DNA of 64,000 bases from Macrostomum lignano (taxonomy: Eukaryota): assembly GCA_002269645.1 (NCBI GenBank), contig NIVC01000652.1, positions 310,001 to 374,000 of the forward strand. The letters are read 5' to 3'. A model generated the notes under the pieces. The model was not told the DNA's origin. It made no database searches and saw only the letters and a program-made list of their open reading frames with translations. This document shows positions 277 to 64,000 of the stretch, piece after piece. The translations under genes and the position numbers were made by a program. Every line of letters starts with the position of its first letter. The first letter of the stretch is position 1.

Positions 277-3200
277 ATGAACCTCAAATACCTGGTGCTG
301 CTGGCCATGATGCTTGCAGCTTCACCGTGTGAGGCTGCATCAACTGCCCGATCCGAGCCGCCCAAAGCTTCTAAAACAAACAGCACTGCACCGCGCATCA
401 AGCAGCTACTCGGTAGCATTGCGAACTCGGTGATCAAAGACTTCAGCAACCTGATGGAAGGCCTGAAGAACCAGAACCTGCTAGCCAACGGCAAAAAGAC
501 TGGGAAGTCAGCCCACAAGTATCGGGCCAACGGCAGGAGTTCCGAATTCTCCTACTTCAATTTCGACGCCACCAAGGACAGAAAGTCGGCAACGTTCGTG
601 AATTTTCAAGTGCACAATGGTTCGACAACGGAGCCGAAGAACAACCAGCTGAAAGGAACGGCGGATAAGTGCGACAAAGTGCGAATCGCGTGCACCACTT
701 CCACCTGCAAAAGTGCGCAGTGCTTCTCCGAGTGTCCGAAAGGCTACCAGCCTAGCGACAAAGATAAAACACTGTGCGTTCCATGCAGCGCTGGCAACGC
801 AAAAAGCTTTGAAGGTAACAGAAAATGCCGCGTCTGTATGGCAGGAACTTTCAGCGCATTCTCGCCGGAAGGATCCACTGGCTGCACTCCGTGTCCGACA
901 GGCAGCTCGAGTGGACCAGGTGCAGCGCGTTGTACCAGCTGCAAGCCCGGGACATTCGCCTCAGCAACCGGATCATCGACCTGCACCCCGTGTTCAGCTG
1001 GATACTTTGCCAGTGAAGCCGGAGCAACAGGTTGCAGCAAGTGTTCCGCTGGCAGCTCGAGTGTCGAAGGTGCGGTAAAGTGCACCAGCTGCAAGGCCGG
1101 ATTCTCTGCGACCGCTGGCGCCGCGACCTGTGCTCCGTGCTCCTCTGGTAGCTTCGCCTCTCAGGCCGGTCAAGCCAACTGCAAAAAATGTCCTGCTGGA
1201 AGCTCGAGTGGACCAGGTGCGGAGAAGTGCACCAGCTGCATGGCCGGAACATTTGCGTCGTCAACTGGAGCATCGAAATGTACCGAATGTCCTGCTGGTA
1301 GCTCGAGCGGACCAGGTGCGAAGAAGTGCACCAGCTGCAAGGCCGGAACATTCGCGTCGTCAACTGGAGCATCGAAATGTACCGAATGTCCTGCTGGTAG
1401 CTCGAGTGAACCTGGTGCAGAGAAGTGTACCAGCTGCAAAGCCGGAACATTTGCGTCGTCAACTGGAGCATCGAAATGTACCGAATGTCCTGCTGGTAGC
1501 TCGAGCGGATCAGGTGCGAAGAAGTGCACCAGCTGCAAGTCCGGAACATTTGCGTCGTCAACTGGAGCATCGAAATGTACCGAATGTCCTGCTGGTAGCT
1601 CGAGCGGATCAGGTGCGAAGAAGTGCACCAGCTGCAAGTCCGGAACATTCGCGTCGTCAACTGGAGCATCGAAATGCACCGAATGTCCTGCTGGTAGCTC
1701 AAGTGGACCAGGTGCGAAGAAGTGCACCAGCTGCAAGGCCGGAACATTTGCGTCGTCAACTGGAGCATCGAAATGTACCGAATGTCCTGCTGGTAGCTCG
1801 AGCGGATCAGGTGCGAAGAAGTGCACCAGCTGCAAGTCCGGAACATTTGCGTCGTCAACTGGAGCATCGAAATGTACCGAATGTCCTGCTGGTAGCTCGA
1901 GCGGACCAGGTGCGAAGAAGTGCACCAGCTGCAAGTCCGGAACATTCGCGTCGTCAACTGGAGCATCGAAATGTACCGAATGTCCTGCTGGTAGCTCAAG
2001 TGGACCAGGTGCGAAGAAGTGCACCAGCTGCAAGGCCGGAACATTTGCGTCGTCAACTGGAGCATCGAAATGTACCGAATGTCCTGCTGGTAGCTCGAGC
2101 GGATCAGGTGCGAAGAAGTGCACCAGCTGCAAGTGGCCGGAACATTCGCGTCGTCAACTGGAGCATCGAAATGTACCGAATGTCCTGCTGGTAGCTCGAG
2201 CGGATCAGGTGCGAAGAAGTGCACCAGCTGCAAGTCCGGAACATTCGCGTCGTCAACTGGAGCATCGAAATGTACCGAATGTCCTGCTGGTAGCTCGAGC
2301 GGACCAGGTGCGAAGAAGTGCACCAGCTGCAAGGCCGGAACATTTGCGTCGTCAACTGGAGCATCGAAATGTACCGAATGTCCTGCTGGTAGCTCGAGCG
2401 GATCAGGTGCGAAGAAGTGCACCAGCTGCATGGCCGGAACATTCGCGTCGTCAACTGGAGCATCGAAATGCACCGAATGTCCTGCTGGTAGCTCGAGCGG
2501 ACCAGGTGCGAAGAAGTGCACCAGCTGCATGGCCGGACATTCGCGTCGTCAACTGGAGCATCGAAATGTACCGAATGTCCTGCTGGTAGCTCGAGTGGCG
2601 AAGGTGCGAAGAAGTGTACCAGCTGCAAGTCCGGAACATTTGCGTTGTCAACTGGAGCATCGAAATGTACCGAATGTCCTGCTGGTAGCTCGAGCGGACC
2701 AGGTGCGAAGAAGTGTACCAGCTGCAAGTCCGGAACATTTGCGTCGTCAACTGGAGCATCGAAATGTACCGAATGTCCTGCTGGTAGCTCGAGCGGACCA
2801 GGTGCGAAGAAGTGCACCAGCTGCATGGCCGGGACATTCGCGTCAACTGGAGCATCAAAGTGTATCGCATGTCCTGCTGGTAGCTCGAGCGGACCAGGTG
2901 CGAAGAAGTGCACCAGCTGCAAGGCCGGAACATTCGCGTCGTCAACTGGAGCATCCAAATGTACCGCATGTCCTGCTGGTAGCTCAAGTGGACCAGGTGC
3001 GAAGAAGTGTACCAGCTGCAAGGCCGGGACATTCGCGTCAACTGGAGCATCGAAATGTACCGCATGTCCTGCTGGTAGCTCGAGTGAACCTGGTGCAGAG
3101 AAGTGCACCCGCGATGTGTGCCCCGATTCCGAAGTCGCTCTCAAGGGCAGCAAGTGCCTGAGTAAGTCATGGCAGCTGTGTTTCACTAGTCGAACGCGTC

Positions 3201-3668
3201 AAGTTAAATAACTCCATCCGATCCTTTTCAGAAAGGGTTGCAGACGTAACCTGCGAAAATCCTTTGAGGCGTTTTGGAGAAACGGCAGTGAAGATGTGCC
3301 GCCAAACAATCGATAACGACCTGAAAACGAGCGGCGACTCGGGCAATTTGGAGTTCCAAGTCAAGCACCGGTTGTATAATCCGCGCACCTTTCTCCAATA
3401 CGCCTTCCGAGTGCCAGTCAACGTGCGCAGAGTAGTGATTTGGAACAAAGTCGGATCGCCAATTGATAAGCTGTATGACATAAAACTCACCTTCCATCCC
3501 AATGCTTTTGAATGCGCCATCGACTCCAAAAGGGGCAAGAAGGCCACCAAAAACAACTACCTGCTGATTGACTTCTGCGTCGCCAATGGGGTAAAAAAAG
3601 CCGAGCTGAGTTTCTGGAAGAAGCGCCAATTCATCTCTATTAGCGAGATCGCCTTCTATACCAACTGA
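277..3668 (+). CDS. Secreted CxxC-repeat protein (GCC2/GCC3, Ephrin_rec_like-type repeats) with an uncharacterised C-terminal globular domain; 2 exons, 2 apparent frameshifts
   Basis: Signal peptide MNLKYLVLLAMMLAASPCEA, then ~19 copies of a 99-bp/33-aa unit (CTSCKAGTFASSTGASKCTECPAGSSSGPGAKK). Frameshifts at ~2133 (+2) and ~2536 (-1). Intron 3162-3231 (A|GTAAGT...TTTTCAG|AA, phase 1) joins in frame to the 3264-3668 ORF. No TM segment seen. Confidence 0.8.
1228..3108 (+). repeat. 99-bp coding tandem repeat (~19 units)
   Basis: TGCACCAGCTGC recurs at 1228, 1327 and onward; units differ at only a few codons (K/M, A/S, P/S, E/A). Confidence 0.95.
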
Positions 3669-4506
3669 GGCTGTCATTCAAATAAACTGATGAAGCGCTA
3701 AATTCACACTTAGAATTCGCGCACAATTTCAATCTTTCTCGAAAAAAAAAAGAAATCGCTTGCACACGTACCTGATTCGCAGTGAGAATGAGCGGTGAGA
3801 ACAGTCTTGTGCAGTAGTGTAGTGAGGTTCGTGACAAATGACGTCTGGACTGTAATGACTCTGCACTCGGACAAAATAGATGGTTGGGTGAAAAATGAGT
3901 TAGGGGACTCAAATTAGGGGACCGATTAGGTCAGTAGCGCGTCTGATTAGCTGGCAGCGCCAAAGTACCTGGCTTACACTAAACTGAAGTACCTTAAGGC
4001 GAGCGAACTGTCAGATTGCTGAAAATAGAGTTTACCTACGCATGCATTGGATGGCAACGTCGCACGGTTGCTGCATCCATCACCACCTATAAGATGGGAG
4101 AATTTATAAGATATACGACGAGCACTCATGGCGGTCTTGGCTGTGAGTGACCAACTGTCAGGCGCCGCCCATTCAATCATTACTACTCTATGCAGAATCT
4201 ATGAAGAACAAAACGCTTGAACCACGTGTGTTAGGACACGCATGGATTTTACAGTAAATAAATCTGCACTTCTGTCAGTTGTACTTGGTGTAAAGTGGAG
4301 CAAAAGATGATTCAGGAATCATGTAGGCATTAATATAAATCAGCAGTTTCAGCATTTGTTCTGCAAAGATAAGATTGCAGGAATTGATTTTTAACTCTAC
4401 TGAGCAGTGAACGAAAAGTTTTTTTCTGAAGGCGTCTCTCAGCCCACGAAGTCGAATCTGTACATCAGCAAATTCCAGTGAGTCATCAGGCTTTAGGAGA
4501 CTGCCG

Positions 4507-11945: not shown

Positions 11946-12919
11946 CTAAAAAATTCTGAGTTGACGGCTAGCCCCACCCATCGCAAGTTGGTTATTTAAC
12001 GTGGGCTGTTTGGTCTTAATGTACAGGGCTTCTAATAGGCAGAGCATGTGATCTCTATTACAAAAATCAATAGCCTTTATCATTTCGTGTGGTTCAGCCT
12101 CACAACAAGAATTGCAGGTTAGCAGGTGTTCGTTAATAGCAGAGTTTTTTAGCCAGTGCTCTCTGACCCTCGTGTATAAGTGTCGTTTAGTTTTTCCTAT
12201 GTAGGAGATGCTCTGGTCCTCAGAGCAAACAAATTTATACACGACACCAGCCGCGAGAGGACGTGGAACACTGGATTTCAACTTGCAGACAAACTTAGCA
12301 ATCTTTTCGGTGCGAAACACAACACGGATTTGAGTGTTTAAGTCTTTACGGAGCAGCTTTTCTAACTTCTTTTTAAACTCTATAGAACAAACACCAAAGT
12401 AAGGCAAAGTGATCAAGGGACATTCAGAGGTGGAATCACGAACTTTCATCCGATTAGGTTCAGTCAGTTTGTCATTGAGAAAAGAGTTGACAATTTTCAT
12501 CACAAAGTTCTTAGGATAGCCATTGTAGCTGAGCAGATTGGTGAGGATTTCAACTTCGTTGTGGAAAAGTCTCCAAGAGCTGCAAGTGGAAAAAGCCCGG
12601 TGAAGAAAGCAACGAATCAATCCGGTTTTCCATTGTCTAGGGCACAAGGCGTCAAACCTAAGCATAAGCCCGGTAAAGCTAGGTTTCCTATACACGCTGG
12701 TCGAAATAGTTTCATCGGTGGCGTCAACGTCAATGTCTAAGAAAGGAAGTCTCCTGCCTCCCCCCTCCGCCGTGAATTTGATATTCTCATGAGTAGAATT
12801 GATTAACTTAAAAAACTCGTCCTTCTTAGCTTCGTCCTCAAAGATCGCAAACGTGTCATCGACGTAGCGTTTGTAGAAGTGAGGCGCACAAGGGAGGGCC
12901 ATCCAGTCCTTCTCCCAGT
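11946..12919 (-). pseudogene. Inverted 5'-truncated Penelope RT/GIY-YIG copy
   Basis: 11644-12919 is the reverse complement of 13055-14330. Confidence 0.9.
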
Positions 12920-12936
12920 TTGAGCATTTTAAGAAG

Positions 12937-14028
12937 ATGCTCAAATTCGCCACCTCCGGCATCTTTCTTTTTCGGGACAAATATTACAGACAGATTGATG
13001 GGTGTGCCATGGGCAGCCCTCTCGCCCCAACCCTCGCTAATTTATGCATGGCCCACTGGGAGAAGGACTGGATGGCCCTCCCTTGTGCGCCTCACTTCTA
13101 CAAACGCTACGTCGATGACACGTTTGCGATCTTTGAGGACGAAGCTAAGAAGGACGAGTTTTTTAAGTTAATCAATTCTACTCATGAGAATATCAAATTC
13201 ACGGCGGAGGGGGGAGGCAGGAGACTTCCTTTCTTAGACATTGACGTTGACGCCACCGATGAAACTATTTCGACCAGCGTGTATAGGAAACCTAGCTTTA
13301 CCGGGCTTATGCTTAGGTTTGACGCCTTGTGCCCTAGACAATGGAAAACCGGATTGATTCGTTGCTTTCTTCACCGGGCTTTTTCCACTTGCAGCTCTTG
13401 GAGACTTTTCCACAACGAAGTTGAAATCCTCACCAATCTGCTCAGCTACAATGGCTATCCTAAGAACTTTGTGATGAAAATTGTCAACTCTTTTCTCAAT
13501 GACAAACTGACTGAACCTAATCGGATGAAAGTTCGTGATTCCACCTCTGAATGTCCCTTGATCACTTTGCCTTACTTTGGTGTTTGTTCTATAGAGTTTA
13601 AAAAGAAGTTAGAAAAGCTGCTCCGTAAAGACTTAAACACTCAAATCCGTGTTGTGTTTCGCACCGAAAAGATTGCTAAGTTTGTCTGCAAGTTGAAATC
13701 CAGTGTTCCACGTCCTCTCGCGGCTGGTGTCGTGTATAAATTTGTTTGCTCTGAGGACCAGAGCATCTCCTACATAGGAAAAACTAAACGACACTTATAC
13801 ACGAGGGTCAGAGAGCACTGGCTAAAAAACTCTGCTATTAACGAACACCTGCTAACCTGCAATTCTTGTTGTGAGGCTGAACCACACGAAATGATAAAGG
13901 CTATTGATTTTTGTAATAGAGATCACATGCTCTGCCTATTAGAAGCCCTGTACATTAAGACCAAACAGCCCACGTTAAATAACCAACTTGCGATGGGTGG
14001 GGCTAGCCGTCAACTCAGAATTTTTTAG
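12937..14028 (+). pseudogene. 5'-truncated Penelope RT/GIY-YIG copy (pseudo-LTR part)
   Basis: Same sequence as 15655-16746, offset 2718 nt. Confidence 0.9.
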
Positions 14029-14212
14029 CTGATTTGTCAATGACCGGACTGGCTTGAAACTGATATGCACTTTACCCAACCAATACTGTATCAAAAATTG
14101 ATTACTATGTACAAGTTTTAAACCATCAATTAAAAACTCAATTCAACTACTCTTGTTACTCTCAACTATCTATATATACTGAATATTCGTTCAAATTGTT
14201 TCTCAATAAAAA

Positions 14213-14256
14213 GACCCTGACGATGTCCTAATGCAAATGGACGAAATGCATCGGCA
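14213..14256 (+). ncRNA. Minimal type I hammerhead ribozyme motif
   Basis: CTGACGA-t-GTCC(loop)GGAC-GAAA-TGC-ATC; palindromic ATGCAT stem III; predicted cleavage after C14252. Stem I is short. Confidence 0.7.
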
Positions 14257-14272
14257 ACTCAAATAATACTTC

Positions 14273-16746
14273 ATGTTGATATTTACCTTTATTTATCTAC
14301 TCTTCATCAAGCGAGCCACTTTACCTGATTTCTATTTTGATATCAACCGTCGCTACCCGGACGTCACTGTTCCATTTCTTCGGAGATTTGAGCGCTACGC
14401 CACTGCCCTTGGCAAGTGCCAGGTGGACAGTTGGTTCCTTCAGCAATGTATTGAACTACAGGTTGCACCCAAGTTTGTCCAGTTCAAGAAACCGAACACA
14501 CCTGTTTTTCGTGATCTATCCAACGTTCACAATGCATTGATTCAACAAGAACTTCGAGCTAACCAACGGAAGACTCATCAACTACGGAATCGAGTCCAAG
14601 AACTTAAGTCAAACTTAAGAAATCAGCTGGGTTTGATCTCCTATGCAGTCCTATGGCATCTAGTGAGCAAGTCAACGCAAGAAAAACTTCGAGCGGACCG
14701 CCTGAGACTCGGAAAGAAGCTTCGCAACCTCTGGACCGAGCAGAAGCATCAGACCCATGGAGCCAATACCATCACCAACCTGTCTCGTCACCAACTCACG
14801 GTCACCGAGCTCAACTGTTTGCAACATGGTCTGCGCAACCCGACGCTACCAAAACGCATCAACAAGCTTAAAATCGCTGCTGAAATTGAATCTGGCCTGA
14901 GTAAGTGTCTAAAAACGGACAATTTGCGAGTTGACGGCGCTGTTCCACCCGATAAGCTTAAACACCGTATCATTGCTGAATTTGAAAAGTTTATCTGTAG
15001 AGCTCAAGGATACGTTAACAAGAAAAGCAATAGGCTTATGCACCAGACTATGAACGGTCTCAAGAACAATGACAACATCAAGATCGTTGGTTACGATAAA
15101 GGCTATGGCGTTGCTGTCTTAGACAGTAATGATTATTTCGAGAAACTTGAGAAAGTGATCCAGGACAAACTCAAGTTTCAATGCCTTGGTACGCCGATAA
15201 AGTCACTATGACCCACCCGATTCTGAAAAATGAAAGATCTCTTCAGAATTTTTTGAGAACTTATGTCAAGCCGCATGTGAGCCCTGAGATTTTTAAGGTG
15301 ATTGTCCCAAATGGTAGCCAACCTGGACAACTGTATGGTCTGTGCAAAGTTCATAAGGATGGTCATCCTTTAAGACCAATTGTTTCGATGATCAACACTT
15401 CAGAGTATGAGCTAGCCAAATTCCTTGACAATTTAATTAAACCTGTTATTCCTTCTGAGCACTGTGTGGGATCCAATAAACAGTTTATTGAGAGCCTCAG
15501 CAATACCACGATTAATCAAACTGACAGGCTTTATAGCTTTGATGTTGTTTCACTGTTCACCAACATCCCTCTCGATTTCACCATTGAGCTGGCTGCTGAT
15601 CTTGTGTATGAAAAAACCGATCCACCTCCTTTCTCCAAAGCCACTTTTAAGAAGATGCTCAAATTCGCCACCTCCGGCATCTTTCTTTTTCGGGACAAAT
15701 ATTACAGACAGATTGATGGGTGTGCCATGGGCAGCCCTCTCGCCCCAACCCTCGCTAATTTATGCATGGCCCACTGGGAGAAGGACTGGATGGCCCTCCC
15801 TTGTGCGCCTCACTTCTACAAACGCTACGTCGATGACACGTTTGCGATCTTTGAGGACGAAGCTAAGAAGGACGAGTTTTTTAAGTTAATCAATTCTACT
15901 CATGAGAATATCAAATTCACGGCGGAGGGGGGAGGCAGGAGACTTCCTTTCTTAGACATTGACGTTGACGCCACCGATGAAACTATTTCGACCAGCGTGT
16001 ATAGGAAACCTAGCTTTACCGGGCTTATGCTTAGGTTTGACGCCTTGTGCCCTAGACAATGGAAAACCGGATTGATTCGTTGCTTTCTTCACCGGGCTTT
16101 TTCCACTTGCAGCTCTTGGAGACTTTTCCACAACGAAGTTGAAATCCTCACCAATCTGCTCAGCTACAATGGCTATCCTAAGAACTTTGTGATGAAAATT
16201 GTCAACTCTTTTCTCAATGACAAACTGACTGAACCTAATCGGATGAAAGTTCGTGATTCCACCTCTGAATGTCCCTTGATCACTTTGCCTTACTTTGGTG
16301 TTTGTTCTATAGAGTTTAAAAAGAAGTTAGAAAAGCTGCTCCGTAAAGACTTAAACACTCAAATCCGTGTTGTGTTTCGCACCGAAAAGATTGCTAAGTT
16401 TGTCTGCAAGTTGAAATCCAGTGTTCCACGTCCTCTCGCGGCTGGTGTCGTGTATAAATTTGTTTGCTCTGAGGACCAGAGCATCTCCTACATAGGAAAA
16501 ACTAAACGACACTTATACACGAGGGTCAGAGAGCACTGGCTAAAAAACTCTGCTATTAACGAACACCTGCTAACCTGCAATTCTTGTTGTGAGGCTGAAC
16601 CACACGAAATGATAAAGGCTATTGATTTTTGTAATAGAGATCACATGCTCTGCCTATTAGAAGCCCTGTACATTAAGACCAAACAGCCCACGTTAAATAA
16701 CCAACTTGCGATGGGTGGGGCTAGCCGTCAACTCAGAATTTTTTAG
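14273..16746 (+). CDS. Penelope-like RT-GIY-YIG endonuclease polyprotein, split by a -1 frameshift at ~15180-15210
   Basis: RT motifs QIDGCAMGSPLAPTLANL and YKRYVDDTF; GIY-YIG VVYKFVC...SYIGKTKRHLYTRVREH; N-terminal FLQQCIELQVAPKFVQFK segment. Confidence 0.9.
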
Positions 16747-17548: not shown

Positions 17549-18900
17549 CTTCGCCTGTCCGGAAAGTCGTGAGAATGTGTCAGTCAAGCAAGAAAGCAGC
17601 AAGCTGATGACATGGCACACATAAAATTTCAATAATAGACTTATATATGTCTATGGTGAAAATTTTTGTTATTCTAGCAGCAAAATTGGGGGCAGGGGCG
17701 AGCTCAGCATAAAGTGCTCAATAACCAATGCAACGCAGTGATCAAGCTTGAAAAATTTAATAGCAAGTTCGTCAAAATGGAAGATTTCCAGGCTTATGCC
17801 TATGCTAGATACTGTCTTGGAATCTCTGCTATTAGTTGTTATGACGAACTACTTAAAGTTTATGGAGATGCCGCACCAGGTCAGTCAACGGTTTACAGAT
17901 GGTACTCAAAGTTCCGTGATGAAGCATTTCCCCTGGCCTCAGCTCCTCGGACTGGCCGGCCACAGTCAACAAGGACAACGGAACTGATCGAAACCTGCCG
18001 AGCTCTCGTTGAAGAGGATTCAAAAGTTAGTGTCCGAGACCTCGCCGACTTTTTGGAAGTTGGTAAAACAACAGTGCACAAAATTTTGACCGAGGATTTG
18101 CACCTTCGAAACGTTTCTGCCATCTGGGTTCCTCATGCTCTATCCGAGGAGAACAAGACTGCTCGCATCAATTGTGCCAAGCAAATCCGCAGGCTTTTTT
18201 ACAACGAGGGGGTGGAAAACTTTTGCGACAAGTATGTGGTGGAAGATGAGACGTGGGTGTACCTGAACAACACTGGCACAAAGCAAAACAACAGGTGCTG
18301 GCTTGGCCAAGGAGATCATTGGCCCCAGGTTGTCAGGCACTCGGTTGGGAATGCAAAGACAATGCTTCTGGTTGCTTTCACTCCAAGCAAGTGCTTCTCC
18401 ATTAAATCCACAGCCCCGAAGCAAACTGTTGATGCAGATGGCATAGTTGAATTCATTCGGCACATGGGAGACCGATGGCGTACTCTGAGGTCAAAGCCAA
18501 TTCACCTGTCGGATGTTCTTTGGCAGTGGGACAATGCGCGACCTCACGTAGCCCGTTCTGTGCAGCAGTACATGGAGTCCCATGGAGTTCAGCTGGTGTT
18601 TCAGAGTCCCTACAGCCCAGACTTCAATCTGTGCGACCGTTTTTTGTTCAGTTGGATGAAGAATGATTTCTCCAGGTGAGTATTCAGCGACCACAATGAA
18701 GTTCGAGAAGCTGCGTTGCAGTGGGCAAGAAGCCTTGACGAAGATTGTTTAAAAAGAGAGGTTCAGCAACTCGTTGACCATTGCCAAGCTGTAATCAATG
18801 CAAGGGGAGATTACATTACCAACTAGTGCTGTTGTCGTGTTTTTTGATAGTTCTGACTGGTTTTTTAAATACATTCTCGCGACTTTCCGGACAGCCGAAG
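17549..18900 (+). mobile_element. Mariner (Tc1/mariner, DD34D) DNA transposon
   Basis: 30-bp TIR CTTCGCCTGTCCGGAAAGTCGTGAGAATGT with a 2-mismatch inverse at 18871-18900; TA on both flanks. Confidence 0.95.
17777..18826 (+). pseudogene. Mariner transposase (~349 codons) with one in-frame TGA at 18677-18679
   Basis: WVPHAL, EDETW, DNARPH, YSPDFNLCD (34 residues between the 2nd and 3rd D). The frame continues past the TGA to ...ARGDYITN*. Confidence 0.9.
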
Positions 18901-22530: not shown

Positions 22531-24866
22531 ATGCACCACGGTCACAGTCACGATCACGATCACGGCCACAGCCACGGAGGCCACGACCCGTTCGCCGGCA
22601 TGACACCCGGCGCCATGGCCGCCGCAGCCGCAGCTGCCGCAGCTCCGATCCCCATGGACTCGGAGGGCAAGGCCTATCCTGTGGACCCGGCCTACCGGAT
22701 GCAGACCCAGCAGCAACAACAGCAGCAGCAGCAGGTACAACAGGACACCAGCAACTGGGACATGGTCAAGGCCTGTCAGTACGGAGTTGTGCCAAGAGTT
22801 CGCGAGCTGCTTAACAGCGGCTTCGATGCCAACACGCTGGACAGTCAGGGCGTTTCGCCGCTGCACTGGGCCGCCATCAACAACAGGCTGGAGATCATGC
22901 AGATGCTGGTCAACCACGGTGCCATTGTTGACCGTCCCGGTGGCGATCTGCAGGTCTGGATAGTGAAGGAGAGGGGGTCTGGGGCAGCGGGTCGTGAGAG
23001 ATATGGGAATTACTCATTCATAATCTGTCTTAGCTATTATAGTCTCAGATACGACTCAACGGCCCAAGAGTCATTACAGAAGTGCTCAGAGTCACTTGCG
23101 TCGCCCCAGAGTCGGTTCTGAGTCGCAGACAGTAAAAAACGCCTTACGACTTAGGCGACTTGTACCGGCCGTGACATCTCGTATTCCTATTTTACCTGTG
23201 TTACCTGCAGCGACTCTGAGGTGACGCAAGTGACTCTGGGCTGCTTTCTTGGCCTTGGTGCCGTTTGCATCGGGTAATTTCCGTAGTTGTTCTTCACGCT
23301 TCTTATCTGAAATGCCATTGATGATCGCAGGGCACCCCTCTGCACTGGGCCTGTCGCCAAGGCAACCTGTCTGCCTGCTGCTTGCTGATGCGGATGGGCG
23401 CCAATCCGCTGCTGACAGACGCTGAGGGCCTCGCCTGCCTGCACCTGGCTGCCCAGTTCGGCTACACGCACATCCTGGCCTACCTGCTGGCCAAGGGCGC
23501 CGACCCCAACCTGCGCGACTGCAAAGGCATGACGGCCCTCATGTGGACGGCGCTGAGGGTGCTGCAGCCCGACGCCACCCGGGTGCTGCTGGCCTTTGAC
23601 GCCAACCCGAACGCGTCCGAGCCGAACAGCGGCAACACGCCGGCGCACTTTGCTGCTCTGGGCGGCAACCAGATCGTCCTCGGCTGCCTGGACCGCGCCG
23701 GCGTCGACTGGACGGCCATCAACGCCAACGGCGAGACGCCCGTGCAGATTCTGCAGCAGAAGAAAATGCGCTGGCTGGCCGAACGGCTCAAGGAGATGAT
23801 GTCGGACCGGGGGATACTGCGCGACTCGTCGGCTAGCGCTGGCGGCTTCTTCCGGTCGTTGGCCACCAGGGAGAACCGGCGCTGGTGCATGCTGGCGGTG
23901 CCCAGCCTCCTGCTGGCCTGCGCCGGCCTCATCTTCCACGCCGCCATCTCCTACGTGCTGAAGCTGGCGCTACTAGTCGGCCTGGCCGTGTTCTTCCGCC
24001 TGGTGTTCAGCCGGAAGTGCCTGGACCTGCGCTACCCCATGCTGCTGCCGTTCGGGCTGGCCGTGGGCTCCGAGGTGATCCTGACGTCTACCTGCGTGCT
24101 GCTGATGTTCCCCTACAATAGCTATGGGGACATTGTGCTGTTCACCACCGTCATATCCGGCATGTTCTACTTTCATTGGCGCTGCGCTGTGCGGGACCCC
24201 GGCTTCCTGAAGATCGACAAGACCGCCCGCGTGCAGTCCATCGTGCGCACCTGCGAGGATCCATCGGCCAGTTTCGATAACTTCTGCTCCACCTGCCTCA
24301 TCCAGAAGCCGCTCCGGTCCAAGCACTGCGACATGTGCGGCCGCTGTGTGGCCCGCATGGACCACCACTGCCCCTGGGTGTACAACTGCGTGGGCGTGGC
24401 CAACCACCGCACCTTCGTTGGCTACCTCACCGGCGTGGTGCTCGGCACCTCCATGTTCCTGAAGATGTTCCTGTCCTACGTGTACCACCCGGACAGCTCC
24501 TGCAGCCTGGACTGGGACACCGTGGGGCTCAAAGCTCTGTTCACCAGGACTCCAATCTGCTCAACCTGGGCATTCTTCTGCGCTTGCCTCGACTCGCTGT
24601 ACCTATTCTGGGTTGCTATGCTGTTGCTAAGCCAGCTGTGGCAGATGCTGTGCGTCAACATGACAACCAACGAGCGATTCAATTCTTTCCGCTACGCTCA
24701 CTTCCAGACCAGCATGCCGAAAGTGCTCAAGAGCCCCTTCAACCAGGGCGTCTTCAAGAATTTCAAGGATTATTTCCTCACGCACAGCAGCGCCTCGCCC
24801 TGGTTCCACGTCTACGATGTCGACGACTTGAAGAGTCCACCGAAGCCCCCAACTCAGTCAGTGTAG
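22531..24866 (+). CDS. ZDHHC17: Ankyrin-repeat DHHC palmitoyltransferase (HIP14/Akr1 family)
   Basis: Exons 22531-22953 and 23331-24866. Ankyrin repeats (SPLHWAAINN, TPLHWAC), TM helices, CRD CSTCLIQKPLRSKHCDMCGRCVARMDHHCPWV, NMTTNE motif. Confidence 0.92.
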
Positions 24867-25714: not shown

Positions 25715-27934
25715 GGATCTGTCAGACTGCAGGGGATAATTCTACTAATTGGGATCTGTCAGACTGCAGGGGATAATTCTACTTTGGGATCTCTCAGACT
25801 GCAGGGGATAATTCTACTTTGGGATCTCTCAGACTGCAGGGGATAATTCTACTTTGGGATCTCTCAGACTGCAGGGGATAATAATTCTACTTTGGGATCT
25901 GTCAGACTGCAGGGGATAATAATTCTACTTTGGGATCTGTCAGACTGCAGGGGATAATTCTACTAATTGGGATCTGTCAGACTGCAGGGGATAATTCTAC
26001 TAACTGGGATCTGTCAGACTGTAGGGGATAATTCTACTTTGGGATCTGTCAGACTGCAGGGGATAATTCTACTAATTGGGATTTGTCAGACTGCAGGGGA
26101 TAATTCTACTAACTGGGATCTGTCAGACTGCAGGGGATAATCCTACTAATTGGGATCTGTCAGACTGCAGGGGATAATTCTACTAACTGGGATCTGTCAG
26201 ACTGCAGGGGATAATCCTACTAATTGGGATCTGTCAGACTGCAGGGGATAATCCTACTAATTGGGATCTGTCAGACTGCAGGGGATAATTCTACTAATTG
26301 GGATCTGTCAGACTGCAGGGGATAATTCTACTTTGGGATCTGTCAGACTGCAGGGGATAATCCTACTAATTGGGATCTGTCAGACTGCAGGGGATAATCC
26401 TACTAATTGGGATCTGTCAGACTGCAGGGGATAATCCTACTAACTGGGATCTGTCAGACTGCAGGGGATAATCCTACTAATTGGGATCTGTCAGACTGCA
26501 GGGGATAATTCTACTAACTGGGATCTGTCAGACTGCAGGGGATAATCCTACTAATTGGGATCTGTCAGACTGCAGGGGATAATCCTACTAATTGGGATCT
26601 GTCAGACTGCAGGGGATAATTCTACTTTGGGATCTGTCAGACTGCAGGGGATAATCCTACTAATTGGGATCTGTCAGACTGCAGGGGATAATCCTACTAA
26701 TTGGGATCTGTCAGACTGCAGGGGATAATTCTACTAATTGGGATCTGTCAGACTGCAGGGAATAATCCTACTAATTGGGATCTGTCAGACTGCAGGGGAT
26801 AATTCTACTAATTGGGATCTGTCAGACTGCAGGGGATAATTCTACTAATTGGGATCTGTCAGACTGCAGGGGATAATTCTACTAATTGGGATCTGTCAGA
26901 CTGCAGGGGATAATTCTACTTTGGGATCTGTCAGACTGCAGGGATAATTCTACTAATTGGGATCTGTCAGACTGCAGGGGATAATTCTACTTTGGGATCT
27001 CTCAGACTGCAGGGGATAATTCTACTTTGGGATCTCTCAGACTGCAGGGGATAATTCTACTTTGGGATCTCTCAGACTGCAGGGGATAATAATTCTACTT
27101 TGGGATCTGTCAGACTGCAGGGGATAATTCTACTAATTGGGATCTGTCGGACTGCAGGGGATAATTCTACTAATTGGGATCTGTCAGACTGCAGGGGATA
27201 ATTCTACTAACTGGGATCTGTCAGACTGCAGGGGATAATTCTACTAACTGGGATCTGTCAGACTGCAGGGATAATTCTACTAATTGGGATCTGTCAGACT
27301 GCAGGGGATAATTCTACTTTGGGATCTCTCAGACTGCAGGGGATAATTCTACTTTGGGATCTCTCAGACTGCAGGGGATAATTCTACTTTGGGATCTCTC
27401 AGACTGCAGGGGATAATAATTCTACTTTGGGATCTGTCAGACTGCAGGGGATAATTCTACTAATTGGGATCTGTCAGACTGCAGGGGATAATCCTACTAA
27501 TTGGGATCTGTCAGACTGCAGGGGATAATTCTACTAACTGGGATCTGTCAGACTGCAGGGGATAATCCTACTAATTGGGATCTGTCAGACTGCAGGGGAT
27601 AATTCTACTAATTGGGATCTGTCAGACTGCAGGGGATAATTCTACTAATTGGGATCTGTCAGACTGCAGGGGATAATTCTACTAATTGGGATCTGTCAGA
27701 CTGCAGGGGATAATTCTACTAATTGGGATCTGTCAGACTGCAGGGGATAATTCTACTAATTGGGATCTGTCAGACTGCAGGGGATAATTCTACTAATTGG
27801 GATCTGTCAGACTGCAGGGGATAATTCTACTAATTGGGATCTGTCGGACTGCAGGGGATAATTCTACTAATTGGGATCTGTCAGACTGCAGGGGATAATT
27901 CTACTAACTGGGATCTGTCAGACTGCAGGGGATA
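25715..27934. repeat. 35-37-bp minisatellite (~60 copies)
   Basis: Unit GGGATCTGTCAGACTGCAGGGGATAATTCTACTAATT. Confidence 0.97.
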
Positions 27935-55265: not shown

Positions 55266-55644
55266 TACTGAACTGAAAGTAGAAAGCTGTTTTGCTAAGT
55301 ATATATGCCTGAGTGGCCCATCTAGTTATTGTATCTGTGGCCTAGACAGGGAGAGAAAACAGAGTAAACAGAGACAACGAAGGCATGCACACGGAAGGCC
55401 TGTGACGGAATTGTAGAGTAAAGTAAGCCAGCCTGCATCAAACCAATTTTAACAATACGCATGTGCTATTGTGAGAGACGTCAGTGAAACCTTGGAGGTA
55501 ATCCACCTATACTAAAAATATAATTAAAACTTCATAAACTGGACAATCGATAACAAGAAGTGGCAAACGGACTCGAGATCCACCGGCCACACCCATGTTC
55601 GCATGAAAAAATGGCAGGTGTTAGCAGACGTGACGAGCGCATTG

Positions 55645-56874: not shown

Positions 56875-59800
56875 CTACTCTTTATAGAAAAACGCCAACT
56901 CAATAATGATGACCTTGTGATATGGCTTCGGCGTGACCTCCATTGCTTGCGCATTCGCGCATTCAAAGTTATTGTACCGCCTGAACGTTGGGAAGTGTTT
57001 CTCCTTGCCGGATGGCAGGCATCGGAAATTCAAGTTCTCTGCGCTGCTTCTGGCGTTTGACTTTGCCATTAAAAGAAACTTTTTATATCAACTGTCTTCG
57101 AAAACGTGTAAAACAGAAAGTCACGCCCGGGACCATCAGCGTAAGCGACTCCGTACGACCACACATTCAAGTCTATAGAATACCTGCACGTTTTCGATAT
57201 GCCGTCTTTAGAAGAGCACTCGATATTAACTCGATCTAAATGTCGGTGGGAAAGTGGATATAATTTTTATTCACGTTTTTATAAGTTCCAATATAAGTAA
57301 ATTATGAGTACCGTCCCGAACAGATGTCTAAAAATAGCTCCAAAGCTGGTATCCCGTCCTACTGGCACAGGGACTGCCTCAGGCCACAACTTGTGACGCT
57401 CGATTAGCAATAAACTCCTGTCAGGTCAAGTCGTTGACAATGTCCCCAAAAAGCTAACTACAAAAAATAAAACGGAAAATAAATTATAAAATCAGCTCAC
57501 CATAACATTTATATTTTGTGAGTGTCGGGGTGAACTCGGGGCACTCGTCGCATATGCTCATACCAGATCGATATGACAAATTGTTCTCCAAGTTGCACTG
57601 TATGCATTCGGTAGCCCGCTGAATACTGGATCGCGTGCCAGGGGGGCAGGGCGTGCAGGTGCTACTACCAGTTTTGTTCGTGAAGTAGCCAGGGAAACAA
57701 TCAAAGCATTTGTCTGAACCAGGGCTTGGCGCGTATTGCCCTACCCGGCAAAGACTGCAACGCGTAGAGCCAGGCTCCTCAGCCACGCTGCCAGGGGGCA
57801 CATCGTGCAGCTAGAGGTGCCCTCCCGATCTGCAAAATGCCCCCCGAACATTGAATGCAGTGCCTTGATCCAGCAGGCGAAAAATGACCCTTGGGGCACA
57901 AGCGGCAGGACAAAGCACCCGAACGGCTCCAGCTGCCTGCATTGCATAACTCGCACAAAGAGGCACCGCTATGGCCGCTGTATCTGCCAGGCGACAAGGT
58001 TTGCACTCACTTGAGCCGTTAGAATTAGCAAAAGTTCCAGAGAACATCGCCTGCAAGAAGAAGATCCAGCAGACGAGGAAAATGATCCAGGGATGCAGGC
58101 AGTACACGCACTTGAACCAAGTCCACTCCAGGTGCCTACGGGACAAGGATTATAGGAGGTCGAACCGACTCCATTTATAAAATAGCCAGCAGGACTAGGG
58201 GTGCATTCTATTGAATTCAAAGTCGAAGAAAAATATCCAGCAGGACACTTGGTGCATTCCTTGGACCCTTCTTGTTGGCGAAGCTACCCGTGGACACTTA
58301 GTGCAGGCGCTTAACCCGGCTCGGTCAGCAATGCTTCCTGCCGGGCACTGGGTGCATGCCGAAGAGCCGACAGTTAGATTGTTCCAGGCTCGCAGTTCGT
58401 ACACGCGGCCGCGCCTTTACCGCTCCACGTGCCTGCAGGACACGGTTTAGCGCTTGTCGAGCCAGTCTTGTCGACGAATGATCCCGGTGGACTCGGTGTA
58501 CACTTGCTAGATCCGGCGATCGCAAACGTTCCCGCCTTGCACTTGGTCGGCTCGGAGGCGCCGTTGGTACACACGCTTCCAGCAGGACACTTGGTGCATT
58601 CCTTGGACCCCTTCTTGTTGGCGAAGCTACCCGGTGGACACTTAGTGCAGGCGCTTAACCCGGCTCGGTCAGCAATGCTTCCTGCCGGGCACTGGGTGCA
58701 TGCCGAAGAGCCGACAGTTGAGATTGTTCCAGGCTCGCAGTTCGTACACGCGGCCGCGCCTTTACCGCTCCACGTGCCTGCAGGACACGGTTTAGCGCTT
58801 GTCGAGCCAGTCTTGTCGACGAATGATCCCGGTGGACTCGGTGTACACTTGCTAGATCCGGCGATCGCAAACGTTCCCGCCTTGCACTTGGTCGGCTCGG
58901 AGGCGCCGTTGGTACACACGCTTCCAGCAGGACACTTGGTGCATTCCTTGGACCCCTTCTTGTTGGCGAAGCTACCCGGTGGACACTTAGTGCAGGCGCT
59001 TAACCCGGCTCGGTCAGCAATGCTTCCTGCCGGGCACTGGGTGCATGCCGAAGAGCCGACAGTTGAGATTGTTCCAGGCTCGCAGTTCGTACACGCGGCC
59101 GCGCCTTTACCGCTCCACGTGCCTGCAGGACACGGTTTAGCGCTTGTCGAGCCAGTCTTGTCGACGAATGATCCCGGTGGACTCGGTGTACACTTGCTAG
59201 ATCCGGCGATCGCAAACGTTCCCGCCTTGCACTTGGTCGGCTCGGAGGCGCCGTTGGTACACACGCTTCCAGCAGGACACTTGGTGCATTCCTTGGACCC
59301 CTTCTTGTTGGCGAAGCTACCCGGTGGACACTTAGTGCAGGCGCTTAACCCGGCTCGTCAGCAATGCTTCCTGCCGGGCACTGGGTGCATGCCGAAGAGC
59401 CGACAGTTGAGATTGTTCCAGGCTCGCAGTTCGTACACGCGGCCGCGCCTTTACCGCTCCACGTGCCTGCAGGACACGGTTTAGCGCTTGTCGAGCCAGT
59501 CTTGTCGACGAATGATCCCGGTGGACTCGGTGTACACTTGCTAGATCCGGCGATCGCAAACGTTCCCGCCTTGCACTTGGTCGGCTCGGAGGCGCCGTTG
59601 GTACACACGCTTCCAGCAGGACACTTGGTGCATTCCTTGGACCCCTTCTTGTTGGCGAAGCTACCCGGTGGACACTTAGTGCAGGCGCTTAACCCGGCTC
59701 GGTCAGCAATGCTTCCTGCCGGGCACTGGGTGCATGCCGAAGAGCCGACAGTTGAGATTGTTCCAGGCTCGCAGTTCGTACACGCGGCCGCGCCTTTACC

Positions 59801-62800
59801 GCTCCACGTGCCTGCAGGACACGGTTTAGCGCTTGTCGAGCCAGTCTTGTCGACGAATGATCCCGGTGGACTCGGTGTACACTTGCTAGATCCGGCGATC
59901 GCAAACGTTCCCGCCTTGCACTTGGTCGGCTCGGAGGCGCCGTTGGTACACACGCTTCCAGCAGGACACTTGGTGCATTCCTTGGACCCCTTCTTGTTGG
60001 CGAAGCTACCCGGTGGACACTTAGTGCAGGCGCTTAACCCGGCTCGGTCAGCAATGCTTCCTGCCGGGCACTGGGTGCATGCCGAAGAGCCGACAGTTGA
60101 GATTGTTCCAGGCTCGCAGTTCGTACACGCGGCCGCGCCTTTACCGCTCCACGTGCCTGCAGGACACGGTTTAGCGCTTGTCGAGCCAGTCTTGTCGACG
60201 AATGATCCCGGTGGACTCGGTGTACACTTGCTAGATCCGGCGATCGCAAACGTTCCCGCCTTGCACTTGGTCGGCTCGGAGGCGCCGTTGGTACACACGC
60301 TTCCAGCAGGACACTTGGTGCATTCCTTGGACCCCTTCTTGTTGGCGAAGCTACCCGGTGGACACTTAGTGCAGGCGCTTAACCCGGCTCGGTCAGCAAT
60401 GCTTCCTGCCGGGCACTGGGTGCATGCCGAAGAGCCGACAGTTGAGATTGTTCCAGGCTCGCAGTTCGTACACGCGGCCGCGCCTTTACCGCTCCACGTG
60501 CCTGCAGGACACGGTTTAGCGCTTGTCGAGCCAGTCTTGTCGACGAATGATCCCGGTGGACTCGGTGTACACTTGCTAGATCCGGCGATCGCAAACGTTC
60601 CCGCCTTGCACTTGGTCGGCTCGGAGGCGCCGTTGGTACACACGCTTCCAGCAGGACACTTGGTGCATTCCTTGGACCCCTTCTTGTTGGCGAAGCTACC
60701 CGGTGGACACTTAGTGCAGGCGCTTAACCCGGCTCGGTCAGCAATGCTTCCTGCCGGGCACTGGGTGCATGCCGAAGAGCCGACAGTTGAGATTGTTCCA
60801 GGCTCGCAGTTCGTACACGCGGCCGCGCCTTTACCGCTCCACGTGCCTGCAGGACACGGTTTAGCGCTTGTCGAGCCAGTCTTGTCGACGAATGATCCCG
60901 GTGGACTCGGTGTACACTTGCTAGATCCGGCGATCGCAAACGTTCCCGCCTTGCACTTGGTCGGCTCGGAGGCGCCGTTGGTACACACGCTTCCAGCAGG
61001 ACACTTGGTGCATTCCTTGGACCCCTTCTTGTTGGCGAAGCTACCCGGTGGACACTTAGTGCAGGCGCTTAACCCGGCTCGGTCAGCAATGCTTCCTGCC
61101 GGGCACTGGGTGCATGCCGAAGAGCCGACAGTTGAGATTGTTCCAGGCTCGCAGTTCGTACACGCGGCCGCGCCTTTACCGCTCCACGTGCCTGCAGGAC
61201 ACGGTTTAGCGCTTGTCGAGCCAGTCTTGTCGACGAATGATCCCGGTGGACTCGGTGTACACTTGCTAGATCCGGCGATCGCAAACGTTCCCGCCTTGCA
61301 CTTGGTCGGCTCGGAGGCGCCGTGGTACACACGCTTCCAGCAGGACACTTGGTGCATTCCTTGGACCCCTTCTTGTTGGCGAAGCTACCCGGTGGACACT
61401 TAGTGCAGGCGCTTAACCCGGCTCGGTCAGCAATGCTTCCTGCCGGGCACTGGGTGCATGCCGAAGAGCCGACAGTTGAGATTGTTCCAGGCTCGCAGTT
61501 CGTACACGCGGCCGCGCCTTTACCGCTCCACGTGCCTGCAGGACACGGTTTAGCGCTTGTCGAGCCAGTCTTGTCGACGAATGATCCCGGTGGACTCGGT
61601 GTACACTTGCTAGATCCGGCGATCGCAAACGTTCCCGCCTTGCACTTGGTCGGCTCGGAGGCGCCGTTGGTACACACGCTTCCAGCAGGACACTTGGTGC
61701 ATTCCTTGGACCCCTTCTTGTTGGCGAAGCTACCCGGTGGACACTTAGTGCAGGCGCTTAACCCGGCTCGGTCAGCAATGCTTCCTGCCGGGCACTGGGT
61801 GCATGCCGAAGAGCCGACAGTTGAGATTGTTCCAGGCTCGCAGTTCGTACACGCGGCCGCGCCTTTACCGCTCCACGTGCCTGCAGGACACGGTTTAGCG
61901 CTTGTCGAGCCAGTCTTGTCGACGAATGATCCCGGTGGACTCGGTGTACACTTGCTAGATCCGGCGATCGCAAACGTTCCCGCCTTGCACTTGGTCGGCT
62001 CGGAGGCGCCGTTGGTACACACGCTTCCAGCAGGACACTTGGTGCATTCCTTGGACCCCTTCTTGTTGGCGAAGCTACCCGGTGGACACTTAGTGCAGGC
62101 GCTTAACCCGGCTCGGTCAGCAATGCTTCCTGCCGGGCACTGGGTGCATGCCGAAGAGCCGACAGTTGAGATTGTTCCAGGCTCGCAGTTCGTACACGCG
62201 GCCGCGCCTTTACCGCTCCACGTGCCTGCAGGACACGGTTTAGCGCTTGTCGAGCCAGTCTTGTCGACGAATGATCCCGGTGGACTCGGTGTACACTTGC
62301 TAGATCCGGCGATCGCAAACGTTCCCGCCTTGCACTTGGTCGGCTCGGAGGCGCCGTTGGTACACACGCTTCCAGCAGGACACTTGGTGCATTCCTTGGA
62401 CCCCTTCTTGTTGGCGAAGCTACCCGGTGGACACTTAGTGCAGGCGCTTAACCCGGCTCGGTCAGCAATGCTTCCTGCCGGGCACTGGGTGCATGCCGAA
62501 GAGCCGACAGTTGAGATTGTTCCAGGCTCGCAGTTCGTACACGCGGCCGCGCCTTTACCGCTCCACGTGCCTGCAGGACACGGTTTAGCGCTTGTCGAGC
62601 CAGTCTTGTCGACGAATGATCCCGGTGGACTCGGTGTACACTTGCTAGATCCGGCGATCGCAAACGTTCCCGCCTTGCACTTGGTCGGCTCGGAGGCGCC
62701 GTTGGTACACACGCTTCCAGCAGGACACTTGGTGCATTCCTTGGACCCCTTCTTGTTGGCGAAGCTACCCGGTGGACACTTAGTGCAGGCGCTTAACCCG

Positions 62801-64000
62801 GCTCGGTCAGCAATGCTTCCTGCCGGGCACTGGGTGCATGCCGAAGAGCCGACAGTTGAGATTGTTCCAGGCTCGCAGTTCGTACACGCGGCCGCGCCTT
62901 TACCGCTCCACGTGCCTGCAGGACACGGTTTAGCGCTTGTCGAGCCAGTCTTGTCGACGAATGATCCCGGTGGACTCGGTGTACACTTGCTAGATCCGGC
63001 GATCGCAAACGTTCCCGCCTTGCACTTGGTCGGCTCGGAGGCGCCGTTGGTACACACGCTTCCAGCAGGACACTTGGTGCATTCCTTGGACCCCTTCTTG
63101 TTGGCGAAGCTACCCGGTGGACACTTAGTGCAGGCGCTTAACCGGCTCGGTCAGCAATGCTTCCTGCCGGGCACTGGGTGCATGCCGAAGAGCCGACAGT
63201 TGAGATTGTTCCAGGCTCGCAGTTCGTACACGCGGCCGCGCCTTTACCGCTCCACGTGCCTGCAGGACACGGTTTAGCGCTTGTCGAGCCAGTCTTGTCG
63301 ACGAATGATCCCGGTGGACTCGGTGTACACTTGCTAGATCCGGCGATCGCAAACGTTCCCGCCTTGCACTTGGTCGGCTCGGAGGCGCCGTTGGTACACA
63401 CGCTTCCAGCAGGACACTTGGTGCATTCCTTGGACCCCTTCTTGTTGGCGAAGCTACCCGGTGGACACTTAGTGCAGGCGCTTAACCCGGCTCGGTCAGC
63501 AATGCTTCCTGCCGGGCACTGGGTGCATGCCGAAGAGCCGACAGTTGAGATTGTTCCAGGCTCGCAGTTCGTACACGCGGCCGCGCCTTTACCGCTCCAC
63601 GTGCCTGCAGGACACGGTTTAGCGCTTGTCGAGCCAGTCTTGTCGACGAATGATCCCGGTGGACTCGGTGTACACTTGCTAGATCCGGCGATCGCAAACG
63701 TTCCCGCCTTGCACTTGGTCGGCTCGGAGGCGCCGTTGGTACACACGCTTCCAGCAGGACACTTGGTGCATTCCTTGGACCCCTTCTTGTTGGCGAAGCT
63801 ACCCGGTGGACACTTAGTGCAGGCGCTTAACCCGGCTCGGTCAGCAATGCTTCCTGCCGGGCACTGGGTGCATGCCGAAGAGCCGACAGTTGAGATTGTT
63901 CCAGGCTCGCAGTTCGTACACGCGGCCGCGCCTTTACCGCTCCACGTGCCTGCAGGACACGGTTTAGCGCTTGTCGAGCCAGTCTTGTCGACGAATGATC
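56875..64000 (-). CDS. Second CxxC-repeat protein with the homologous C-terminal domain; 5' end outside the window; several frameshifts
   Basis: 115-aa repeats, then degenerate CxxC units (57500-58400, many indels), phase-1 intron 57236-57500 (G|GTGAG...TTTAG|AT), last exon 57235-56875 with a 1-nt deficit at ~57072. Confidence 0.72.
58210..64000 (-). repeat. 345-bp near-perfect coding tandem repeat (at least 16 units)
   Basis: The same short ORF recurs at 58655, 59000, 59689, 60034, 60379, 60724...; single-base indels at ~59355, ~61322, ~63140. Confidence 0.97.

Follow-up and report, generated by a model that had tools for sequence, protein, structure and literature searches.

The 64,000-nt stretch of the genome of the free-living flatworm Macrostomum lignano analysed here (the window, to whose positions all coordinates refer unless another locus is named) carries at 277-3668 on the forward strand a real two-exon gene, which we call gene 1, and at its far end, on the reverse strand, a related gene, gene 2. 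Both are already catalogued as transcripts: gene 1 is the locus of Mlig-pro17, and gene 2 is the locus of Mlig-pro50 and Mlig-pro62. Gene 1 is probably a member of an M. lignano family of secreted prostate-gland, putative seminal fluid proteins with a lectin-like tail. Each member of this family consists of a signal peptide, a conserved first cysteine-rich module, a stalk of GCC2/GCC3 repeats, a phase-1 intron and a C-terminal domain of 120-145 aa; the number of stalk repeats has been changed by recent tandem amplification, with 19 repeats of 33 aa in gene 1 and more than 16 of 115 aa in gene 2, and it is mainly in how many amplified units they have, and of what type, that members differ. An earlier note on this DNA had proposed a gene family of secreted proteins with a CxxC stalk of variable length and a shared C-terminal domain on its own exon, and this outline is supported by the results below.

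The features of gene 1 are as follows.

277..3161, forward strand: exon 1 of gene 1 (Mlig-pro17 locus), beginning at the ATG at 277, from the open reading frame (ORF) and Pfam matches
277..336, forward strand: signal peptide coding region (MNLKYLVLLAMMLAASPCEA|AS), by inspection of the sequence
667..810, forward strand: first stalk module (C.VR...QC..ECP.GYQ.SD...LCVPC), conserved across the family by BLASTP
755..1162, forward strand: region amplified for the published Mlig-pro17 in situ probe (RNA815_2976.a); the primers match at 755-777 and 1142-1162
1189..3064, forward strand: tandem array of 19 units of 99 nt, 33 aa per unit, each with two CxxC half-units (CPAGSSSGPGAKKCTSCKAGTFASSTGASKCTE)
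3162..3231, forward strand: predicted intron, 70 nt, phase 1, canonical (GTAAGT...TTTTCAG)
3232..3668, forward strand: exon 2, encoding the 144-aa C-terminal tail domain, with TGA at 3666-3668
3681..3686, forward strand: AATAAA polyadenylation signal, starting 13 nt past the stop codon

In exon 1 the signal peptide is followed by a unique N-terminal region and then by the cysteine-rich stalk. By inspection, the N-terminus has a hydrophobic core followed by an AxA-like (small-x-small) cleavage site, and inspection of the corrected product gave no further hydrophobic segment after the signal peptide. The stalk matches the Pfam family Ephrin_rec_like (GCC2/GCC3, PF07699) with 172 bits (E=1.8e-51; gathering cutoff 23.1 bits) over 10 stretches in the first 509 aa, in agreement with the GCC2/GCC3 likeness that the earlier note had seen in the CxxC/GxF units; Tandem Repeats Finder (TRF) places the 99-nt array at 1187-3109 and counts 19.5 copies in it (94% identity). 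The Giardia VSP-like family PF03302 reached 13.2 bits, below its cutoff of 31.4, and gene 1 has no C-terminal hydrophobic anchor. The splice that the note had proposed at 3162-3231 is exact in its coordinates and in the peptide that it would add, its donor reading A|GTAAGT (3161/3162) and its acceptor TTTTCAG|A (3231/3232). Translated exon 2 reads KRVADVTCENPL...ISISEIAFYTN, i.e., KRVADVTCENPL...QFISISEIAFYTN, and then TGA. With both of the indels discussed below corrected, the conceptual coding sequence is 3321 nt long and the product has 1106 aa, 47 CxxC motifs and 9.8% Cys, the tail taking up residues 962-1106; about 75% of this protein is stalk, which is 28% Ser+Thr and 9.8% Cys.

The identity of these genes with known transcripts comes from the primers with which Weber et al. 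2018 made their in situ probes; the sequences appear in Supplementary Table S11 of Brand et al. 2020 (PMC7336406). The Mlig-pro17 primers match gene 1 exactly and once each, and the resulting amplicon of 408 nt equals the listed probe length. The primers of Mlig-pro50, Mlig-pro62 and RNA815_7654.1 are found exactly in every repeat unit of gene 2, and those of Mlig-pro42/44/58/60/69 match the locus of a further M. lignano protein, P0004 (PAA66978.1). At this last locus the primer pair RNA815_14562.b spans the intron between stalk and tail; the listed probe is 766 nt, compared with 761 nt spliced and 831 nt unspliced, and thus fits the spliced distance, which supports splicing of this intron. 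At least eight Mlig-pro candidates (pro17, 42, 44, 50, 58, 60, 62 and 69) are in this way three genes of one family. The matched transcripts are prostate-limited in situ and regarded as putative seminal fluid proteins (Weber et al. 2018, PMC5977470). Because the genes are loci of prostate-limited transcripts, their biological setting is seminal fluid, rather than the mucus, adhesion, egg coat or immune recognition at which the earlier note had guessed. The transcript to which the Mlig-pro17 primers map, Mlig000890.g6, has positional counts of 3/0/0/9350, which put it in the class Tail, and shows higher expression in worms kept in groups of eight than in isolated ones (log2 fold change 2.69, adjusted p 1e-16; PMC7336406). 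Another tail-specific, group-induced transcript, Mlig000890.g30 (2826 nt, counts 0/0/0/5791; PMC7336406), may be a duplicate or alternative model of gene 1.

Published annotation had not brought these fragments together. Blast2GO had labelled RNA815_2976 'serine threonine [kinase]' and two P0004 fragments 'GCC2 and GCC3 domain containing', while the gene 2 fragments carried the entry 'No Blast Hit' (PMC5977470). The first label derives from a match to a Galdieria 'protein kinase, putative' that covers the GCC2/GCC3 repeats only, and gene 1 contains no kinase domain. Our literature searches turned up no mention of these genes in main texts, and the link runs through supplementary primer tables. 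The Mlig-pro set of Weber et al. 2018 comprises the identical genes, but the papers treat them as separate transcript fragments, and the Mlig-pro literature consulted contains neither the full gene structure nor the common architecture nor the shared C-terminal domain. The earlier note's description of an undescribed family thus does not apply to the genes, which are known as Mlig-pro17 and Mlig-pro50/62; as far as we found, what is new is a tail domain absent from Pfam and the recognition of the transcripts as one family.

The tail is a real family, and the family is defined at both ends of the stalk. The tails of genes 1 and 2 taken alone align by BLASTP over 53 aa at 26% identity (E=0.005), about 2.5 standard deviations above shuffles, and the earlier claim that these two tails can be aligned does not reach significance on that pair. 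When a composite of the gene 1 N-terminus, several repeats and the tail served as query, 78 proteins matched, all through the repeats alone and at 25-50% identity; the two best matches were the M. lignano hypothetical proteins P0004 and P0005 (PAA54418.1). At both of their loci a tail follows a phase-1 intron (70 and 68 nt, respectively) directly past KC[YH], so that the intron preceding the tail has identical phase and position in four loci. The annotated P0005 tail is shortened by a frameshift, its true end ...IYIAEIALYAE lying in another frame; in P0202 (PAA91672.1), a 90%-identical copy of P0005, the tail is intact. The set used for the tail family comprised gene 1, gene 2, P0004 and P0005, with P0202 in addition. 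P0004, P0005 and the window tails have in common the motifs C..C..[ST]ID.[ND].[..][ST][YS]G, [FWY]..Y.[FL]......V[KR] and I.I.E[IL]A.Y, and their pairwise identities are 21-32%. When hidden Markov models (HMMs) were built from three tails and run against the fourth, the leave-one-out E-values (at Z=1) were 3.3e-10 for gene 1, 1.1e-6 for gene 2, and 4e-9 and 5e-11 for the others, and none of 2000 shuffles per target reached the real score for any tail (0/2000 for each). Homology of the tails is secure because two further M. lignano paralogues enter these profiles; a failure to align by profile, which the earlier note had named as grounds for discarding the family, was not seen (leave-one-out E=1e-6 to 5e-11). 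At the other end of the stalk, the first module of gene 1 matches P0004 with E=2e-15 and P0202 with E=4e-14 by BLASTP.

Searches for the tail beyond these paralogues returned little. Among 202 compared proteins, just the three M. lignano ones matched the tail profile. A word-indexed homologue search with tail 1 found none, and exact-protein look-ups with two ORF versions of the tail found no record. An exhaustive phmmer search with tail 1 against 1.84 billion representatives gave three hits, all to proteins with internal repeats, that we rejected as spurious, each being a chance match of about 30 aa summed over 6-10 repeats. Single-sequence searching is too weak to carry a claim of lineage restriction, because phmmer missed the true paralogue P0004.

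Gene 2 repeats this organisation with a different stalk unit.

57501..64000, reverse strand: exon 1 of gene 2 (partial, running off the window edge), more than 16 units of 345 nt (115 aa)
57236..57500, reverse strand: intron of gene 2, 265 nt, phase 1 (GTGAGC...TTTAG)
56875..57235, reverse strand: exon 2 of gene 2, homologous tail, ending ...KVIIIELAFFYKE

TRF finds a 345-nt array of 16.7 copies at 99% identity, and Ephrin_rec_like matches gene 2 with 92.6 bits (E=1.2e-26; Pfam). Exon 1 ends KYKCYG|gtgagc before an intron of 265 nt, not about 70 nt; its position is homologous in genes 1 and 2 (KC[LY] | [KD]RV..[VI].C), and the tail that the earlier note had placed in the other-end gene, after an intron of equal phase and position, lies behind a phase-1 intron at the matching spot. 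The gene 2 tail contains a one-base frameshift within the A-run at 57080-57084. The corresponding published transcript, Mlig000334.g11, is 12.3 kb long and tail-limited (supplements, PMC7336406), and because of this length we conclude that the array extends well beyond the window. One-base deletions are present in the gene 2 units (58236-64000, reverse strand) at 63143, 61323 and 59357, with three more in the last unit. A 121-nt satellite of eight 96%-identical copies (55643-56602) starts about 270 nt downstream of the gene 2 stop.

The locus of P0005 may add a further module. Just upstream of its stalk-tail part (L002:4553-5898), and on the same strand, lies an ORF with a perforin-like MACPF domain (PF01823, E=2.5e-13) at L002:627-3274 on the forward strand; it is accompanied by sites that match almost exactly the primers of RNA815_324.1 (Mlig-pro14), RNA815_324.2 and RNA815_324.3, which are prostate transcripts. 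Judged from the genomic arrangement, the P0005-type gene may be a MACPF-stalk-tail fusion, putatively expressed as a single transcript. A mariner-type transposase ORF (HTH_48, Transposase_1; L002:3377-4372, reverse strand) sits between the MACPF ORFs and the P0005 part, either within an intron or disrupting this P0005 copy. The peptide VYVYPMGVGP[LV]LMN[EG]C is common to P0004, at residues ~113-128, and to the ORF that precedes the MACPF domain (L002:627-1088), and gene 1 is without it. P0004 looks like the P0005 gene type minus its MACPF block.

For the fold of the tail, the best-supported reading, and by the modelling a fairly likely one, is a galactose-binding-domain-like jelly roll. AlphaFold2 (AF2) models were built on the four-sequence tail alignment. 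The model of the P0004 tail was all-beta and of marginal to moderate quality (predicted local distance difference test, pLDDT, 54; predicted template modelling score, pTM, 0.54), and among its top 50 Foldseek matches in the PDB nearly all were galactose-binding-domain-like, the remainder being unclassified. The best match was the F5/8 type C domain 3nng (E=1.3e-3, template modelling (TM) score 0.55), and further matches included CBM32, APC10, F-type lectins (lectinolysin and eel agglutinin) and fucosidase C-terminal domains; 3nng, 4a42, 2v72, 3lei and 1k12 had E-values of 1e-3 to 2e-2 and TM scores of 0.45-0.6. The sole hit of the four-tail profile in the PDB was the F-type lectin 2j22, which aligned in the expected register without being significant (E=0.89). 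The tail resembles F5/8 type C, CBM32 and F-type lectin domains in its size (theirs being ~130-150 aa) and in being predicted all-beta, and its motifs follow the same order as in bacterial discoidin domains, where '..ID.N..T.G' leads to a 'W/F-x-x-Y-x-L...V..V.I.W' strand pair and then to an 'I.I.E.A.Y' strand; it differs from discoidin domains in having an N-terminal C-x(10-18)-C pair where these link their first and last cysteines. Neither Pfam discoidin (PF00754) nor F-type lectin (PF22633) was found in tail 1, tail 2, the P0004 tail or whole P0005, and sequence searches of the PDB returned only noise with tail 1 and with the P0005 tail, and no match at all with the P0004 tail. A discoidin-like head, as suggested in the earlier note, is plausible and not proven: it stands as the best current reading through the Foldseek result on the P0004 model, and falls short in its lack of a Pfam match and in the poor model of tail 1.

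Taken together with the prostate expression, these features suggest a working model in which the protein would be secreted into seminal fluid and would pass through the stylet as part of the ejaculate. Its C-terminal domain would be a divergent galactose-binding-domain-like beta sandwich of the discoidin, CBM32 or F-type lectin type, and would attach it to a glycan or glycoprotein carried by sperm, by the wall of the partner's antrum or by other components of the ejaculate. The rigid, Ser/Thr-rich and possibly O-glycosylated stalk would serve as a spacer or scaffold whose length would evolve by unequal exchange. Glycan binding by the tail is putative. In a stronger version, which we estimate to be unlikely, flatworm seminal fluid would have in the tail a targeting module that is lectin-like, evolves fast and is restricted to the lineage; it would dock the whole family to glycans of sperm or of the partner's tract, on rods of repeat-amplified length and with a pore-forming MACPF domain in one paralogue.

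Several results weigh against membership of gene 1 in a family of seminal fluid proteins with a lectin-like tail. As assembled, gene 1 is untranslatable from the ATG through to the tail, and its splice is predicted from genomic sequence. Transfer of the protein to the partner is putative, and RNA interference of Mlig-pro60 and Mlig-pro69, both fragments of P0004, did not significantly change fertility or paternity share (PMC6953679). The lectin-like character of the tail meets further difficulties: Pfam scans gave no family for tail 1 or the P0004 tail (E<=1 / E<=10); hhalign of the tail profile against the discoidin/F-type lectin segment of P0057, a protein discussed below, gave a probability of 0.1; and the fucose triad of F-type lectins (His, Arg-x-Asp-x4-Arg/Lys) is unconserved in the four-tail and 2j22 alignments, inspection of which puts K, G or other residues at these positions, so that the His/Arg/Arg arrangement is absent from the tail. 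The AF2 model of the gene 1 tail itself had a pLDDT of 39 and, used as a control, returned immunoglobulin-like or unrelated noise from Foldseek (E>=0.5), and the fold assignment rests on one paralogue's marginal model from a four-sequence alignment.

The frame of gene 1 can be examined more closely, since exon 1 as assembled changes frame twice and the tail is in frame only with its last third.

2133..2134, forward strand: two extra bases relative to the repeat consensus of gene 1, with AAGTGGCCGG where other units show AAGTCCGG or AAGGCCGG
2537, forward strand: one base missing relative to the repeat consensus of gene 1, GGAAC becoming GGAC (AA to A)

These frame breaks are most likely long-read assembly errors and not decay, with the gene intact in vivo; the insertion at 2133-2134 resembles a merged consensus of the unit variants AAGTCCGG and AAGGCCGG and is a probable assembly artefact. 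It could be supposed instead that the window copy is a decaying pseudogene and that Mlig-pro17 is expressed from another, intact copy. Apart from the two frame-breaking indels, this alternative would be served by the ~180 Mb of duplicated blocks in the M. lignano genome (PMC5730564), by the annotation of two tail-specific transcripts, Mlig000890.g6 and.g30, in one cluster, and by the published length of the Mlig-pro17 transcript, 2494-2628 nt against a corrected coding sequence of 3321 nt; short transcripts are, however, expected where Illumina assemblies collapse repeats. Against decay, the N-terminal region, splice sites and tail of gene 1 are free of stop codons and other lesions, and unit-by-unit alignment of its repeats gave 16/11/33 substitutions at codon positions 1/2/3, with 33 of the 60 synonymous and 27 non-synonymous. 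This excess at third positions and of synonymous changes leads us to conclude that the repeats have been under purifying selection in the CxxC frame. Isolated indels of like kind also occur in gene 2, P0005 and the P0004 model, and the frameshifted P0005 tail exists in an intact version in P0202. In gene 2, not one substitution separates the sixteen complete 345-nt units, which vary solely through the loss of single bases from short homopolymers; indels without substitutions are the signature of PacBio consensus error, and we therefore ascribe them to long-read consensus error and not to mutation. The identity of these units reflects either extremely recent homogenisation or variation collapsed by the assembler. 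The reference assembly is PacBio/Canu-based, and 15% of it consists of simple and tandem repeats (PMC5730564). We consider the pseudogene explanation improbable.

The protein of gene 1 could also act without binding sugar. It may be a structural protein of the ejaculate or matrix, in which the Ser/Thr/Gly-rich, disulfide-rich stalk is the functional part (as a mucin-like gel, a plug, or a coating of sperm or stylet) and the tail serves folding, oligomerisation or protein-protein contact. The share of the protein taken up by the stalk (~75%, with 28% Ser+Thr and 9.8% Cys) and the massive difference in repeat number between paralogues would suit such a role, as would the unconserved canonical fucose-binding residues and the fact that many galactose-binding-like domains bind proteins, APC10 and XRCC1-N among the Foldseek matches being examples. 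The tail is, however, the most consistently kept non-repeat part across paralogues, and its motifs C..C..[ST]ID.[ND] and I.I.E[IL]A.Y have been kept at 21-32% identity, which suggests a specific function. No result here separates a structural from a lectin role; on balance we regard a purely structural protein as possible, and somewhat unlikely. A third possibility is that the head binds microbial glycans, making the protein an immune or antimicrobial pattern-recognition component of seminal fluid that protects the ejaculate or the partner's antrum instead of acting on partner or sperm. The closest folds are indeed modules for microbial or host glycans and F-type lectins, a group that often has immune roles in animals; a MACPF ORF lies just upstream of the stalk-tail module at the paralogous locus; and the Blast2GO labels of prostate transcripts include 'fungistatic metabolite' (PMC5977470). 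The up-regulation with group size, however, fits sperm competition at least equally, and the joining of MACPF ORF and stalk-tail in one transcript is itself putative; an immune role seems remote to us.

The proposed docking of a seminal fluid protein through a lectin-like tail can be set beside several known systems. Proteins with many GCC2/GCC3 units share the tandem CxxC modules of gene 1; one of them, P0057 (Ephrin_rec_like, PF00754 and PF22633), demonstrates that the combination of GCC2/GCC3 repeats with discoidin or F-type lectin domains exists outside this family. The lectin domains of P0057 are Pfam-recognisable and lie inside the repeat region, whereas the gene 1 tail is C-terminal and has no Pfam match. 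Within M. lignano, the adhesive proteins Mlig-ap1 and Mlig-ap2 (Wunderer et al. 2019, PMC6410801) also belong to the tail region of the animal, are large, secreted and cysteine-rich, and, like the gene 1 family, have long near-identical tandem repeats together with carbohydrate-interaction domains, which in the gene 1 family are putative. They differ in their vWD, C8, TIL, EGF, TSP1, C-type lectin and LDL domains and in being products of the adhesive glands, not the prostate (PMC6410801); membership of gene 1 among the Mlig-ap proteins was considered and rejected, as the vWD/TIL/EGF/TSP1 set is absent from its Pfam scan. Collectins, ficolins and lectin-targeted pore formers such as lectinolysin follow a like logic, with an elongated spacer bearing a terminal carbohydrate-recognition module, and the lectin domain of lectinolysin is among the fold matches of the P0004 tail model. 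This likeness is an analogy only: in contrast to collectins and ficolins, the gene 1 stalk has no collagen or coiled coil, and its oligomerisation would be hypothetical, as is the link of the paralogous MACPF ORF to the stalk-tail part.

Research on sexual selection in the hermaphrodite M. lignano gives seminal fluid proteins a central place, yet most of the 76 Mlig-pro candidates are unannotated fragments. The reduction of at least eight Mlig-pro fragments to three genes lowers the count of independent candidates, in which the authors of the list had themselves suspected an overcount, and the architecture of the family explains the misleading labels 'serine threonine kinase' and 'No Blast Hit'. 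It also suggests a function that can be tested, in which a discoidin-like head, borne on a stalk of variable length, would dock to glycans. As the pro60 and pro69 knock-downs both hit one paralogue, redundancy within the family could hide any effect. Beyond this field the result is ordinary, being a divergent member of a very common fold joined to a common repeat.

Between genes 1 and 2, at 22500-51400 on the forward strand, are five housekeeping-type genes that we named by eye from ORF translations: zDHHC17-like, glucan branching enzyme-like, MFS-like, deoxyhypusine synthase-like and SNAP29-like. The zDHHC17 exon (23382-24866) matches the M. lignano protein BOX15_Mlig003792g1 with 100% identity. 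The introns of these neighbours are packed with minisatellites, with units of 37 nt x 60 at 25715-27934 and of 24 nt at 36852-37928 (x 45), 44177-45221 (x 44) and 49537-50997 (x 61). Closer to gene 1, inspection by eye revealed a reverse-transcriptase-bearing element at 11946-16746 whose 3' part is present twice, inverted, such that 11946-12980 on the reverse strand mirrors the ORF ends at 12937-14028 and 15181-16746 on the forward strand. A 321-aa ORF at 17714-18679 (forward strand) appears by eye to be mariner-type transposase-like, and a 525-aa cysteine-rich ORF at 53180-54757 (reverse strand) possibly comes from another mobile element.

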